Shown piece after piece: positions 2,087-12,048 of a stretch of DNA of 64,000 nt. The notes beneath the pieces were generated by a model. The model had not been told where the DNA came from, did not search any database, and worked only from the letters and a program-made list of their open reading frames with translations. The first letter of the stretch is position 1, and the number at the start of each line of letters is the position of its first letter. The stretch lies in sequence record PQ471515.1; one strand, written 5' to 3'. The translations under genes were made by a program, and so were the position numbers.

Positions 2087-4342
2087 TTATTCAATTATAC
2101 TATCGTGACGTTTGAGTGCACGAATTACAATTGCAGCCTGAATTTGTTGTGTAAATGAACCACCTGCACCAAAATCATGAACAATTTTGTTTACACGATA
2201 AACAGTTTGGTTAAATGTAGTTGGGGTATTAATATCAAGAACACCAGTGTTATCATTTATAGAAACTACAGGTTGTAATTTCAATAAAAGATATGCTTCA
2301 GATGTAATGTAGTTTGCTACATGGTAATCTTCTGGATTAATTTCCATATCTTCTCCATTAATTACCTGTTCAAGATATTGGATATATGGATAATCACTCC
2401 AACCTAACCAATATGGGTCACCAACTACACGCATATCCAATTTACACAAGAATGGACGATTGTAATAGTTGTCACGAATTTTACGGCGGTCCATTTCATA
2501 TGTACTACTGTTATCGTTCAATGATGCAGATAATGTTGTTTCATTATTGGTTGCTTCAGTTGGCATTGTGAACACTTCACCATATCGATGACCAATTCCA
2601 TCGGTTCCACCGTCATTTTCTTCATATGTGGTTACATAATCTTCAATATACTGTGGTAGAACGTTTACTTGATAGTTATTATAACGATCCTGTTCTTCAG
2701 CATTACCAACTTGCATTTGTTCTTTTGCTAAAGTTTCAACTTGATTGAGTAGTTGTTCCTGGGCCTGTGTTAACATACCACCAAGATCACGTGTAACGCG
2801 TAAATCACTTGTTTTTGCCCATGCATCTGGTATACTGTTGTACTGAACCCCTTGTATATTCAATTCTTGGGAGGTATGAGTACCAGCGTGGTTAGCAACA
2901 TCCTGTATTGGTCCAGGGTTACGAGTTGTAGCCACAAAGAATTGCTGGTCAAACTTCAAATCAAGGTCTAGAATCTCACTATTGAGTCCACTAAACTGAT
3001 AATTGTAAGTTTTCATGTTAATCTTTGGTTTTTGGTCATTTGGGTCTACATATTTCTCGGCATTTTCAAAGAAATACTCAAATGTAAAGTTTTCTGGCTG
3101 TAAATCGGATTCATGAACAATATCACCAATTTTAAAACGAACTATATAGAAAACAACTTTATAAACTGACGTGTTTCGGTAATTATCAAATCCAACATAC
3201 TGTTTAAGTGGGATTATATTAACAAATTGACGAACACTAGTACTATCATCAGCCTGTACAGTACAGGTATCTATTACGTCATCGATAATTCGAGAAATTG
3301 GAGTACTTGGATTCCATGAAAAGTTTTTAGAACCCTGTGCACCACTTTTTGTAGCTCCAGCTTCTGCCATCTGTTTAGAATCATAGTTTATAAACAAATC
3401 CTGTAAATCTGGTGCAACTTTAAATTCAAAGAACTTCCCTTCTGCTAACTCACCAAATTTATAACGCAAATAACCATATTGTTGGTCTGCCATTTGATTC
3501 AATTTATCTTCCAAATCAAAACAAAAATCACCAAAGTTTTCTGCTGTGCAGTTAAATGGTTCTTTAAGAGTCCATTCAACGTTATCCACTAGAGCCGTGC
3601 GGTTATGAACAAGACTCATAGAATACATCATAGTACTACCACTTTGTGATGCACTAGCGGTAACACTGTTAATCTTCACGGACCATTTACGAGTTGTTTC
3701 TGGTATAGTTTCAGGTACACCATTAGTATTGAATCCAATAAATTTCAATTCTAATATTAAAGGTAAGTCCATGAACTTATGATACCTTAGTTTATTACTT
3801 AAAGAAATTAGTTCATCATATAAACTCATACTATTGTTTTCTGAAAGGTTCAGTACTGCTGTGTTGAAGCAATAGTTGGTTGTCATCCCTGGAGTTGAAG
3901 GACCAGCTTGCGTCATCTGAACACTTGTGATATTATACTTTCCAGTTACACCACTTTCAGAGATGACATGACGTTGAACTTCAGCATCTGGGTAAAGCCA
4001 GAAGTTTTTGAAATCATCCTTGTCTAATGCGAAAAGGGAAAAGTGCCAAGTTGGATTGTCATACTTTAACAATTTATTGTCATAAGGAATAACAAACTCA
4101 CTTAGATCCAAGTCTTCATACACTTGGTCAACGCTTGCACTTTGCTTTGGTAAAGACTGTACGTTACTAACCTTAGCTTTAAAATTGTTTTTTACTTTTT
4201 CAAGATCATTTTGCAAAGTATTAGCAGTTGCTTTTAAGCTTTCAATAGTACTTGTTGCAGTTTCTTTTGCTGCCTTTGCAGAACTTGTGATGTTTGAAAT
4301 ATCATTTTTAAAATTATCAACAGAACTTTGTAAATCTGCCAT
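2087..4342 (-). CDS. Large baseplate/tail structural protein (hub-like, 751 aa)
   Basis: Long ORF between gp5-like and gp53-like genes in the same operon; function inferred from position. Confidence 0.5.
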   Translation of the reverse strand: MADLQSSVDNFKNDISNITSSAKAAKETATSTIESLKATANTLQNDLEKVKNNFKAKVSNVQSLPKQSASVDQVYEDLDLSEFVIPYDNKLLKYDNPTWHFSLFALDKDDFKNFWLYPDAEVQRHVISESGVTGKYNITSVQMTQAGPSTPGMTTNYCFNTAVLNLSENNSMSLYDELISLSNKLRYHKFMDLPLILELKFIGFNTNGVPETIPETTRKWSVKINSVTASASQSGSTMMYSMSLVHNRTALVDNVEWTLKEPFNCTAENFGDFCFDLEDKLNQMADQQYGYLRYKFGELAEGKFFEFKVAPDLQDLFINYDSKQMAEAGATKSGAQGSKNFSWNPSTPISRIIDDVIDTCTVQADDSTSVRQFVNIIPLKQYVGFDNYRNTSVYKVVFYIVRFKIGDIVHESDLQPENFTFEYFFENAEKYVDPNDQKPKINMKTYNYQFSGLNSEILDLDLKFDQQFFVATTRNPGPIQDVANHAGTHTSQELNIQGVQYNSIPDAWAKTSDLRVTRDLGGMLTQAQEQLLNQVETLAKEQMQVGNAEEQDRYNNYQVNVLPQYIEDYVTTYEENDGGTDGIGHRYGEVFTMPTEATNNETTLSASLNDNSSTYEMDRRKIRDNYYNRPFLCKLDMRVVGDPYWLGWSDYPYIQYLEQVINGEDMEINPEDYHVANYITSEAYLLLKLQPVVSINDNTGVLDINTPTTFNQTVYRVNKIVHDFGAGGSFTQQIQAAIVIRALKRHDSIIE

Positions 4343-9556: not shown

Positions 9557-9583
9557 AAAGGGAGCCTTAGCTCCCTTTTTTTA
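9557..9583. terminator. Bidirectional intrinsic terminator between convergent genes
   Basis: AAAGGGAGC-CTTA-GCTCCCTTT with A and T tracts; the endonuclease VII stop codon lies in the loop. Confidence 0.8.
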
Positions 9584-10058
9584 CATCTACCATATTTAAT
9601 TTGCCTTCCTTGATAAGCTTTCTGGCTTGCTTAACACGAGCAGCATTGTTTGCACCAGGGATAACACCTAACTCTTCCAGTATTGCATTCTGTTGTCCTG
9701 CTGGGAGCCTTTTAAACTTATTCGTATCGATTGTTAGTGCAGTGTGATGTATAACTTGCTCATCTTCAGGAATGCTGTTATTACGCTCCAGATAATCCGC
9801 AAGATTTCGTAGTACCTCGTATAAGGGTTTATCGGTTAAGTGCTTCATATAGCGATTAAAGCTGTTCTGTACTTTACCTTCCCATGCGTTCACTTCGTTC
9901 TGGAGAACTTCACGACAGTGTTGATTCTCGAAGTGATAGTGATCAAGTACTGGCTTAGTTATTGGTTCCTTAATTATAGGATCAATTCCTTTTTGCTTCT
10001 TTAGTAATTCATTTCGATAGTTTGCAGCTTCTTTACTATCTTTTAATCTTTTCTTCAT
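9567..10058 (-). CDS. Endonuclease VII (gp49-like Holliday junction resolvase)
   Basis: VLDHYH...R.VL...VN..EGK His-Asn motif; lacks the Zn-binding CxxC pairs of the T4 enzyme. Confidence 0.75.
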   Translation of the reverse strand: MKKRLKDSKEAANYRNELLKKQKGIDPIIKEPITKPVLDHYHFENQHCREVLQNEVNAWEGKVQNSFNRYMKHLTDKPLYEVLRNLADYLERNNSIPEDEQVIHHTALTIDTNKFKRLPAGQQNAILEELGVIPGANNAARVKQARKLIKEGKLNMVDVKKGS

Positions 10059-10152
10059 AAATCCCCACTAAACTAATTCTTATCAAAATATTTATGCGTT
10101 ACTTCAATGTTCAAGAATTATGTACTTTTTATAATTTTTTTATCATAATAGT

Positions 10153-10180
10153 GAGACACTTTTGAATTTGGTGCTATAAT
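10153..10180 (+). promoter_or_regulatory. RRGACA-N16-TATAAT promoter with no downstream ORF
   Basis: GAGACA-16 nt-TATAAT (TG-extended). Confidence 0.7.
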
Positions 10181-10186
10181 GTTAAT

Positions 10187-10639
10187 TGTAGTGATGACAA
10201 TCCTGTTGAATGCAGAAATGCATATAAATTAGAACCTGATCCTATCGAAAATGTAGATGGCAGATGAGCAGTTCAACAGTGCGATGAGCAGAAGAAACCC
10301 GTTAGATGTGGGCATAGTTTGAACCCCTCACGGCGACACGGCTCAATAAAGAACTCCGATAAGCATACAGAGAGTTCCTCGATAGATGTATAAGGATCGC
10401 ACCTTACCAGATTTGCTAAGGGAGTTTATTAAGTGATTTAATAAACAGCCTGAAGTTTGATTGTATAGACTTTCAGGTGAGTGTCAGGATGATTAAGACT
10501 GACGACCGTTGCACATGACTGCGATAGAGAGAAACAGAGCAACCCGCTTTCGTTCTTAATGAATTTTAAGAAATTCGCAATACAATAAATGCTGAAACCA
10601 TCAGCGTCAAGAATTAAGAGACTTAATTGTCTCTTTTTT
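10187..10639 (+). ncRNA. Candidate ~450-nt structured non-coding RNA
   Basis: Promoter upstream, terminator downstream, no credible ORF, at least 8 local stems; family not recognised. Confidence 0.5.
10616..10639 (+). terminator. Intrinsic terminator ending the candidate ncRNA
   Basis: AAGAGAC-TTAATT-GTCTCTT followed by a T tract. Confidence 0.7.
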
Positions 10640-10856
10640 ATTGTCTTCATTCCCCTGCGGGGGGATGAAAATGTCTTCAACAAATCCCGTCAAGTATTAA
10701 ATCTTTTAAAGTTCTTTATAATTAATTATAAGAAATGAATATGAGTTACGTAGTAACGAATATTCTTCAGCTAACGAATGAAATGAGTTAGATGAGTTCA
10801 CTATAAAATAATTAATTCCTTTCATAATTCAATTCAATCAATTCTGTAGTTTAAAA

Positions 10857-10885
10857 CCAAAAAAAAACCAGCAACAATGTGCTGG
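10857..10885 (-). terminator. Intrinsic terminator of the gp26/gp51-like operon
   Basis: CCAGCA-ACAATG-TGCTGG preceded by an A run (U tract on the minus strand). Confidence 0.65.
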
Positions 10886-10896
10886 CTCCTTGTGAG

Positions 10897-11106
10897 TTAG
10901 TGCTTCTCGTTTTGTTTTTTAATTTTCTTATTAAAAGACTTAACTAATAAGTCTCTATCAATTAGTGGCATATTAAGTAGTGTTCCGTAATCAACACTTT
11001 CCATATAAACAGAACACTCCATTAATGCAGTTTTAATATCTGACTTATTCAACTCAAATTCCTTAAGTACTTCTTGTATTTCTTCAGGAGATGAGTGGAG
11101 AAGCAT
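10897..11106 (-). CDS. Small baseplate hub assembly protein (gp51-like)
   Basis: 69 aa, coupled by TAATG to the gp26-like gene; LLNMPLIDRDLL motif. Confidence 0.5.
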   Translation of the reverse strand: MLLHSSPEEIQEVLKEFELNKSDIKTALMECSVYMESVDYGTLLNMPLIDRDLLVKSFNKKIKKQNEKH

Positions 11107-11942
11107 TATGCGAAAAAATGACTTGGGTCATATTTCAGTCCATTAATTTCCCATTGATGATTACAGTCACTGCATTCAACTTCCATAGTATGGGAAACAC
11201 CAATTTCAAGTACTTCATCCATTTTTTCACGAATTATTTTAAGTGTTCCTTTGGACTGCTGGCCTAGCCATTCAGAAATGAATTCGTTTTCAGTTACTTC
11301 ATCACCTTCAGGAGTAATTACTTTAGCAATAACTCCTGCGATCATATCAAAGTTGAGTTGTGCCATACTTTCAAATACTTCACCAAAAACTTTAACTTTT
11401 TCTTCCTGCTCCATTTCGGCAGTTTCAAGGAATTTAGTTTTTTGTTGTTCTGTAAACATTCTTTCTGCGAAGTTAGAATATTCCTTCCAAGTAAGTGGTC
11501 TAAACTCTAAACTTAGTCCATTATCCAATTGTACAGTAGGAACTTCACTGAAAGTTTGTGCTGTTTCTAGTAGATATGATAAGCTACGCTCAAAACGGCC
11601 TTCTTTGTTACATTCAGGGCATGTCACATTAATATCATATGATTCTTCTTTAGAAGCTACTTTAATAGCGATAAGTAGTTGCTCTACGTCATTTACATAA
11701 AGTTCATCTGCATCAAGTACGTTAGGTACGCAGTTTTCAATAACACGAGCAATTGCATCACCATTTAGAAGCATATCTGGTGTATTGAGTGTCATTTCAT
11801 CACGTGCACTACGAGCACAAATGCCACATTTGATACCTTTAGAGCCAAGAACTCCTTCTTTATAAGGAATCACGCCATTTGTGACCAATTTTGTACCAAG
11901 TTCTTCAATTTTAGTATACTTAGCTAGTGGGTTCATTGCCAT
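11106..11942 (-). CDS. Baseplate hub assembly chaperone, gp26-like
   Basis: Start ATG 11942 with GGAG SD; DEMTL, AIKVAS, CPEC and CSDC motifs; divergent from the tape measure gene. Confidence 0.65.
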   Translation of the reverse strand: MAMNPLAKYTKIEELGTKLVTNGVIPYKEGVLGSKGIKCGICARSARDEMTLNTPDMLLNGDAIARVIENCVPNVLDADELYVNDVEQLLIAIKVASKEESYDINVTCPECNKEGRFERSLSYLLETAQTFSEVPTVQLDNGLSLEFRPLTWKEYSNFAERMFTEQQKTKFLETAEMEQEEKVKVFGEVFESMAQLNFDMIAGVIAKVITPEGDEVTENEFISEWLGQQSKGTLKIIREKMDEVLEIGVSHTMEVECSDCNHQWEINGLKYDPSHFFA

Positions 11943-12048
11943 TTTATTAAATCTCCATGTAATAAATGTCTCTGTAGTATTTATTACCAAAAAAATGGGA
12001 CAAATTGGACAAATGTTATAGATGGGTCTTTTTTATTCGTTATAGATT

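Follow-up and report, generated by a model that had tools for sequence, protein, structure and literature searches.

Within the 64-kb window analysed here (the whole 64,000-nt stretch taken from sequence record PQ471515.1), positions 10059-10897 form an 841-nt gap between open reading frames (ORFs), and the question is what this gap encodes. It is bordered by an endonuclease VII gene on one side and by a small hypothetical gene plus a baseplate hub gene on the other. A preliminary description had proposed a novel structured RNA, enclosed by a promoter and a terminator. From its sequence the window is an Asteriusvirus (121Q/PBECO4-like), i.e. a Rak2-like jumbo phage with a genome of ~350 kb, because its DNA matches that of Escherichia phage Turkey3 with 100% identity and those of 121Q and PBECO4 with ~93-97%.

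Transcription signals and coding potential

The following elements frame the gap.

9567-10058, - strand: endonuclease VII gene, left border of the gap
10151-10180, + strand: sigma-70-type promoter with a -35-like hexamer, a 16-18 nt spacer and a TG-extended -10
10616-10640, + strand: intrinsic terminator with a 7-bp stem (10616-10635), a 6-nt loop and a T-run; 6/6 tested stem pairs covary
10695-10903, no strand assigned: AT-rich spacer (23% GC) ending in a bidirectional terminator at 10862-10903
10897-11990, - strand: small hypothetical gene and baseplate hub gene, right border of the gap, convergent with the RNA

The GC content of the RNA region is 40%, compared with 36% for the whole window and 21-23% for the flanks. 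A signal scan found the promoter (10/12 match), with a -10 element (TATAAT) at 10175-10180, a TG at 10172-10173 and a -35-like hexamer starting at 10151 or 10153, in agreement with the consensus promoter that had been proposed at 10153-10180. The TG and -10 columns are near-invariant in 62 homologues, including the chromosomal island copies described below. Transcription would start at ~10187. The intrinsic terminator proposed at 10616-10639 was likewise recovered as a stem with a T-run. It is present in 35 of the 62 non-redundant members of the family and missing in 27; among the members that have the hairpin, its stem pairs covary (6/6).

The hairpin at 10862-10903 has T-runs on both strands and ends the + strand RNA unit as well as the - strand baseplate hub genes. 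A weak match to the Rfam family Arrc14 at this position reflects the terminator hairpin only. The spacer in front of it (10695-10860; 165 nt, 23% GC) contains several AT-only palindromes and no ORF, and is unconserved beyond close relatives.

The earlier statement that the region holds no credible ORF was borne out. On the + strand the longest ORF has at most 24 codons. An 81-codon ORF on the - strand (10438-10683) is stop-free in none of 61 homologues, and the indels among the homologues are mostly not multiples of three. We rejected a protein-coding gene because no set of homologues keeps an ORF open in frame and because of these indels. GenBank records of close relatives nevertheless annotate short hypothetical coding sequences (CDSs) on the - strand over 10438-10650 and 10706-10825 (g340 and g341 of fEgEco12; others in Turkey5, Hallingskeid and Yen9-04). 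Over-calling on the RNA gene and its spacer almost certainly accounts for these annotations, and one further GenBank record labels part of the RNA region as a repeat_region. A small-protein gene, as these annotations would have it, or a merely conserved intergenic regulatory region without RNA function is barely conceivable, since the annotated ORFs are lost in homologues and the substitutions are compensatory inside helices.

Conserved fold and the tail beyond the terminator

The minimum free energy fold of 10187-10645 was only mildly better than that of shuffled sequences, on either strand (z=-2.51 for + and -2.56 for -). Stems visible in a single sequence are therefore no proof of a structured RNA, and the proof has to be comparative. 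RNAalifold predicted 72 pairs from 30 sequences, of which 42 showed compensatory double changes. We also ran our own all-against-all column scan on 36 sequences and calculated per-helix statistics on 62 non-redundant sequences, using shuffled partners and slid registers as controls. Shuffled partners were canonical at a fraction of 0.6-0.8 (variable helices) and slid registers at 0.2-0.5. About 20 helices are kept in the 62 non-redundant homologues, four of them pseudoknot or tertiary pairings with many compensatory changes. Both the covariation check suggested earlier and its central claim, a discrete, non-coding, structured promoter-to-terminator RNA, thus came out positive.

The core helices were canonical in 95.4% of cases when read as + strand versus 92.0% when read as - strand, and the core pairs contained 214 G-U cells on the + strand versus 68 on the - strand. 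This excess agrees with the orientation of promoter and terminator. The alignment is not structure-aware outside the core, which is why the peripheral helices P1, P7 and P8 score poorly in the broad 62-sequence set. The predicted fold consists of the following parts.

10203-10282, + strand: 5' domain, comprising P1, a variable hairpin, P2 and PK-a
10203-10210/10272-10279, + strand: P1; covariation seen by eye in alignments A1 and A3
10210-10223, + strand: variable hairpin within the 5' domain
10236-10263, + strand: P2, with a conserved GAAAAUGUA loop; 95% canonical, 7/8 pairs covary
10268-10270/10280-10282, + strand: PK-a, a 3-bp pseudoknot; 100% canonical, 42 compensatory cells
10285-10289/10341-10345, + strand: P3, closing the domain 10285-10345; 100% canonical, 51 compensatory cells
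10290-10298 and 10334-10340, + strand: near-invariant internal loop enclosed by P3, with AGAAGAAAC at 10290-10298 (conservation profile)
10299-10302/10330-10333, + strand: P4; 100% canonical
10303-10329, + strand: variable, expandable hairpin inside P3/P4
10336-10338/10387-10389, + strand: PK-b, a tertiary pairing (10336-10389) that spans P5; 98% canonical, 19 compensatory cells
10351-10356/10372-10377, + strand: P5 (GAACTC/GAGTTC); 6/6 pairs covary, 126 compensatory cells
10391-10395/10402-10406, + strand: P6, in the segment 10391-10446
10416-10424, + strand: CUAAGGGAG, near-invariant and single-stranded
10424-10446, + strand: P7 hairpin, lineage-specific; longer insert modules stand in for it in relatives
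10449-10586, + strand: 3' core, comprising P8-P12, PK-c and PK-d
10449-10459/10466-10478, + strand: P8; its loop 10460-10466 enters PK-c
10460-10466/10580-10586, + strand: PK-c, a 7-bp pseudoknot; 7/7 pairs covary, 100% canonical, 120 compensatory cells
10482-10487/10499-10504, + strand: P9
10508-10512/10539-10543, + strand: PK-d (GUUGC/GCAAC), interleaving with P10 and P11; 100% canonical, 6 compensatory cells
10520-10524/10575-10579, + strand: P10; 99% canonical, 74 compensatory cells
10527-10531/10547-10551, + strand: P11; 100% canonical, 31 compensatory cells
10553-10559/10566-10572, + strand: P12; 90% canonical, 68 compensatory cells
10590-10595/10601-10606, + strand: P13 hairpin as formed in this lineage, in the segment 10590-10611

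The arms of PK-a bracket the 3' strand of P1. By pattern search, the 3' core motif occurs once in the window. PK-c could in principle form within or between molecules, and the covariation fits both. Small hairpin modules (a UACAA/UUGUA-type stem with AAAUU flanks) come and go at the peripheral sites P7 and P12 (alignment A3 columns ~700-735 and 510-570; loci L008, L011, L012, L019, L035 and others). Their stems resemble the PK-c pairing, as if the PK-c helix had been duplicated.

Most of the stems that had been picked out by eye are supported by covariation, namely the hairpin 10210-10223, which is variable, GAACTC/GAGTTC (P5), CCTGAAGTT/GACTTTCAGG, GTCAG/CTGAC and GTTGC/GCAAC, the last being one arm of the pseudoknot PK-d. 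The direct repeat noted earlier, GATGAGCAG at 10264 and 10283, lies inside the conserved core. Three other stems need qualification. The hairpin 10424-10446 holds in this lineage and fails elsewhere, and GCTGA/TCAGC is likewise confined to this lineage, relatives using a shifted helix that includes CGUC. CCTTA was assigned the wrong partner: its pairing with 10417-10421 has no compensatory cells, and the TAAGG on its upstream side (10391-10395; 18 compensatory cells) is the likelier partner. The stem GAATTT/AAATTC (10561-10576) has to be given up, being 55% canonical and clashing with the covarying helices P10 and P12.

The 3' limit first proposed (10639) was too short: conservation runs past the terminator to ~10695. 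The elements concerned are these.

10605-10611, + strand: box 1 (CGUCAAG), just 5' of the terminator
10646-10694, + strand: conserved tail, a C4/G6 hairpin and then a 17-mer ending in box 2
10646-10655/10660-10669, + strand: arms of the C4/G6 hairpin, loop UGCG; the stem changes from C-G to U-G only
10678-10694, + strand: 17-mer ending in box 2 (CGUCAAG, 10688-10694), a second copy of box 1

The tail sequence is unique in the window, and in IMG/VR the tail pattern matched only directly behind full-length copies of the RNA. We therefore rejected the idea that the tail is a DNA repeat in its own right, for instance a promoter or operator. Because the hairpin stem changes only from C-G to U-G, it appears to be selected as a + strand single strand. 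In the 27 of 62 members without a terminator, the RNA has to continue across the hairpin and box 2.

Box 1 forms the 3' strand of P13 in relatives (GAUGC/GCGUC or GACGA/UCGUC; UUCG/CGAA in a divergent subfamily), and box 2 mirrors it across subfamilies, with CGUCAAG, CGUCAG, CUUCAAG or ACGAAG in both boxes. Box 1 and box 2 of the same member were identical at 7.0 of 11 positions versus 5.95±0.12 for shuffled partners, figures that are approximate since a minority of the box 1 assignments (CGACA rows) are wrong. The 5' strand of P13 paired with its own box 1 at -5.3 kcal/mol versus -4.3±0.17 kcal/mol with the box 1 of others; with its own box 2 the energy was slightly better than with others' (-4.55 versus -4.12±0.16 kcal/mol). 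Possible reasons for this mirrored evolution are alternative pairing, strand exchange, or a site of recognition or processing that both boxes share. Consistent complementarity between the tail and the 5' leader that would close the molecule was not found by eye.

Copies in phage genomes and chromosomal islands

All genera of Rak2-like phages (Asteriusvirus, Mimasvirus, Eneladusvirus, Alcyoneusvirus, Munch and XbC2/XaC1) conserve the RNA region, with nucleotide identities of 67-76%; its gene neighbourhood in Eneladusvirus is wholly different. A strict core pattern matched at two to four places per jumbo genome, and blastn at four to five places per record in most genera and at one to two in the Alcyoneusvirus records. 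Judged from these matches, the RNA is one of several paralogues, about 3-5 of them in each Rak2-like genome, whose gene contexts are unrelated. In 121Q the copies lie at ~193, 248 and 327 kb, all on the same strand, each with its own promoter and different neighbours. Searches, among them those with the core and tail patterns, found no second copy in the window. Copies can also stand in tandem: on one strand of a metagenomic contig (L125), a full copy (1027-1535) is followed ~740 nt downstream by the start of a second copy (148-291). Other large metagenomic phages carry a further subfamily with a different 5' domain and the same 3' core. The large metagenomic phage with the divergent RNA subfamily (locus L134) encodes a Thg1-like tRNA-His guanylyltransferase (PHROG 4717) at 3246-3995.

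Wherever the RNA occurs, its promoter is conserved along with it; the neighbouring genes are not. The immediate downstream genes fall into at least 15 different clusters, none common across contexts. A co-oriented ORF begins 28-170 nt downstream in 37 of 62 members, and a convergent gene follows in 22 (59 of the 62 have a called neighbour), this copy and the island copies among them. The RNA thus lacks the consistent co-oriented downstream gene that a put/EAR-type leader or a riboswitch would control, the clusters being unrelated. The RNA had also been suggested as a partner of an Hfq-like protein. Adjacency pointed to no consistent partner protein, Hfq-like or otherwise, and no protein family is common to the neighbourhoods.

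We searched bacterial assemblies and metagenomes with a relaxed core pattern and an nhmmer profile. Full-length members were found, among other assemblies, in the complete chromosome of Serratia fonticola GTA-SR07, on large contigs of Citrobacter amalonaticus, Enterobacter chinensis and Silvania, and at 60-odd metagenomic loci. Two of 5,426 complete E. coli genomes carry the RNA, in an island of ~11 kb adjoining ffs. The island copies keep the promoter, the core, the hairpin and box 2. They always lie where accessory genes are typically found, with a convergent cI-like S24 repressor on one side and an integrase on the other; some islands have a large serine recombinase in this role, others a tyrosine integrase. 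After the repressor follow genes for a Ner/SfsB-like regulator, a 286-aa unknown protein, an LprI-like protein and a Hin-type invertase. No phage homologue of the 286-aa backbone protein was found, and no recognizable replication initiator in the sequenced parts of the islands. Islands of ~10 kb in Enterobacterales (L084, 3733-14625; L152, 9997-20341; L065, L070 and L072) are inserted next to ffs, ppdD/hofB, rlmI or tilS/rof. Their cargo varies; L084 carries the Kiwa defence pair KwaA/KwaB.

In a tree of the RNA, island copies form at least two clades nested among the jumbo-phage paralogues, and a few jumbo-phage copies stand among the island copies. We conclude from this interleaving that the cassette has been exchanged repeatedly and moves horizontally as a functional unit. 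The multi-copy state, the conserved element behind the terminator and the chromosomal island copies had all been missed in the preliminary description.

Its claim of novelty was supported by covariance-model searches. At the gathering threshold, Rfam 15 gave no match to the RNA in the whole window or in three island loci; at E≤10, three divergent members gave chance matches only, none of them common. The candidates dismissed in this way include ROOL, GOLLD, HEARO, group I and II introns, RNase P, tmRNA, 6S, RNAI and riboswitches, none of which provided a matching model. As had been judged by eye, the RNA is thus neither tRNA, tmRNA, RNase P nor a group I intron: ARAGORN found no tRNA or tmRNA gene in the window, and the RNA is intergenic, has its own promoter in every context and lacks a match to Intron_gpI. 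The short words ACGACC, AGAGAG, GCAACCC, ACGUCAAG and UACAAU, which we take to be shared with the RNase P RNA or 16S rRNA of E. coli, are not collinear and the covariance models are silent, so this kinship was put down to chance.

In the literature on non-coding RNAs of jumbo and Rak2 phages, ROOL/GOLLD in jumbo phages, Asteriusvirus transcriptomes and catalogues of structured phage RNAs, we found no description of the family. The 10,006 unnamed candidates for structured RNAs that have been catalogued in bulk from IMG/VR (PMC10690425) may include fragments of it. Taken together, the comparative sequence data indicate that this RNA is a real, conserved and previously undescribed family of large structured RNAs.

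Proposed mode of action and likeness to known RNAs

Near-invariant nucleotides cluster in junctions and internal loops, and the peripheral hairpins vary and take insertions. By analogy, this is the pattern of ribozymes, of scaffolds of ribonucleoproteins and of the self-assembling RNAs ROOL and GOLLD. Together with the lack of a variable single-stranded 'seed', it argues for a pre-organized particle rather than an antisense regulator. That the RNA does not depend on its neighbouring genes and occupies an accessory-gene position in the islands speaks for action in trans on a target common to enterobacterial cells. Our best reading of the comparative data, held with moderate confidence, is that the RNA may be a self-contained, trans-acting, tertiary-folded non-coding RNA of the ROOL/GOLLD type. 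Host sigma-70 RNA polymerase would transcribe 10187-~10640, with read-through to ~10695, from the RNA's own extended -10 promoter, giving an RNA of roughly 450-520 nt; in jumbo phages this would probably take place early during infection, and in the chromosomal islands constitutively. The transcript would fold into two compact domains locked by the four pseudoknot or tertiary pairings. This particle would then act in trans by binding a partner common to enterobacterial cells or by assembling with itself or its paralogues; antisense pairing or action on a neighbouring gene is not what we propose.

Three observations stand against a trans-acting particle. The conserved hairpin and box 2 sit beyond the terminator. 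In the 27 of 62 members without a terminator the RNA continues towards a downstream ORF, and a leader or a DNA-level element accounts for this at least equally well. Replication origins, too, would be expected as several copies scattered over a genome of 350 kb.

In the main rival, which we consider rather unlikely, the cassette would be an RNA-primed replication origin in the style of ColE1 RNA II or the R-loop origins oriF/oriG of T4. Its promoter would drive synthesis of a pre-primer that folds, and the hybrid would persist at the tail, which comprises the T-run, box 2 and, in the displaced + strand, a G-rich hairpin; DNA synthesis or helicase loading would begin there. Jumbo phages would carry several such origins, and the islands would replicate from one, perhaps riding on the jumbo-phage replisome. 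This would explain why conservation extends past the terminator into sequence absent from many transcripts, and the + strand hairpin, with its C-G to U-G changes, could be displaced DNA. The dispersal of the copies in 121Q, the promoter that travels with the cassette, the lack of a recognizable initiator in the sequenced island parts, the AT-rich stretch behind the tail and the T4-type replisome and RNase H-like exonuclease of the phage are all consistent with an origin. However, four covarying pseudoknots and invariant junctions exceed the needs of any known primer RNA, and in 27 of 62 members transcription passes straight through the tail. No antisense regulator was found: there was no Rfam RNAI match, and the promoter-like sites of the - strand (10487-10460 and 10610-10582) coincide with helix strands that differ in sequence among relatives. 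GC skew shows gene orientation and nothing further.

A cis-acting leader is an unlikely explanation. The RNA would be a giant 5' element that modifies the polymerase (processive antitermination, as with HK022 put or EAR) or decides between termination and read-through at 10616-10640, with box 1 and box 2 as alternative partners of one strand. The resemblance of the two boxes (approximate, as stated above) and the slightly better pairing of the P13 5' strand with its own box 2 suggest such a switch; box 2 is, however, transcribed after the terminator and thus powerless over that termination. In 35 members the terminator stands between the RNA and the genes, and in the 27 terminator-less members the RNA is physically the 5' part of an mRNA; the 37 members with a co-oriented ORF point the same way. 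Yet the copy in the window and the island copies face convergent genes and would have nothing to regulate, the downstream genes are mutually unrelated, and known antitermination RNAs measure 70-120 nt.

Slightly less likely again, in our judgement, is a self-processing ribozyme with the invariant junctions as its active site, cutting at or near the CGUCAAG boxes so as to define the 3' end or to free the segment with terminator and hairpin. The size, the pseudoknotted core and the invariant unpaired nucleotides would suit a ribozyme, an 80-nt segment has an identical box on either side, the two changing in step, and the terminator-less members need some form of 3'-end formation. Against this, no known self-cleaving motif in Rfam matches. 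The words GAUGAG...GAAAC are suggestive of a hammerhead, which we rejected because the core deviates and varies among members (GUUGAG in some). The positions at which the GAUGAG-type motifs deviate are essential in the hammerhead core.

Beyond the trans-acting particle as such, we tentatively propose a new class of mobile, protein-independent functional RNA common to virulent jumbo phages and small chromosomal islands. It would be either a catalytic or self-assembling particle acting on a conserved host process, or a portable RNA replicator that makes the islands satellites of Rak2-like phages, and in both cases the identical boxes 1 and 2 would mark a processing or strand-exchange step without known precedent. 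The islands could be jumbo-phage satellites. If the link to origins or to a satellite-helper relationship is true, it bears on the replication of 350-kb phage genomes and on satellites of jumbo phages.

Large intricate RNAs of bacteria and phages are rare (RNase P, group I and II introns, tmRNA, OLE, ROOL, GOLLD, HEARO and raiA), and each has either opened new biochemistry or stayed a prominent orphan. The present RNA is new as a family and, broadly, joins the orphan large RNAs of phages. It is tractable: E. coli phages that can be cultured (121Q, PBECO4, phAPEC6 and many therapy candidates) carry it, as do chromosomes of E. coli, Serratia and Citrobacter, and there is enough covariation to define its fold. 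Genetically it is unusual, with several paralogues and repeated exchange between virulent jumbo phages and integrative islands with defence cargo. The spurious small CDSs that several GenBank records carry over the RNA can now be corrected.

How does the family compare with known systems? The transcripts ncRNA001 and ncRNA002 of phage PA5oct, long non-coding RNAs of 236 and 451 nt defined by RNA-seq, are abundant in infection, at 2-5% of phage reads (PMC7318152). They resemble our RNA in being ORF-free transcripts of a phage related to the Rak2 group. The nhmmer family profile found nothing at their locus and the core motifs were absent by eye; the two transcripts (L043, 764-999 and 14452-14902) are unrelated in sequence to the family. 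Related jumbo phages therefore carry different large ORF-free transcripts.

The processive-antitermination RNAs HK022 put and EAR lie directly downstream of an early promoter, are often followed by a terminator and then co-oriented genes, and occur more than once per phage genome, all of which recalls the RNA described here. The latter is five to seven times larger and shows no similarity to them, and many of its copies, including that in the window, lack a co-oriented gene downstream.

With ColE1 RNA II and T4 oriF/oriG the RNA shares its own sigma-70-type promoter, a transcript of ~500 nt whose folding is functional, conserved DNA at and beyond the 3' end, and the lack of an initiator gene nearby. 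T4-like phages have several transcript-primed origins. Unlike ColE1 RNA II, the RNA has no counterpart to the antisense RNA I that could be found by the Rfam RNAI model or from the - strand promoter-like sites. Its tertiary structure is also far more elaborate than that of these origins, and 35 of the 62 members have a canonical terminator ahead of the candidate origin site.

The closest parallels are ROOL and GOLLD, large ornate RNAs of phages and prophages that are both Rfam families. The present RNA matches neither covariance model, and its hosts are Enterobacterales, as opposed to the Lactobacillales or rumen taxa that host ROOL and GOLLD. It lies away from tRNA genes, of which the window has none (ARAGORN), has several paralogues per genome and is accompanied by a conserved element beyond its terminator. 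Cryo-EM has shown that ROOL and GOLLD form RNA-only multimers (bioRxiv 10.1101/2024.12.08.627333). Like ROOL and GOLLD, our RNA exceeds 400 nt and is a large, stand-alone, structured non-coding gene of lytic phages and integrated elements, with many helices and pseudoknots, an invariant core, a variable periphery and no dedicated partner protein gene.
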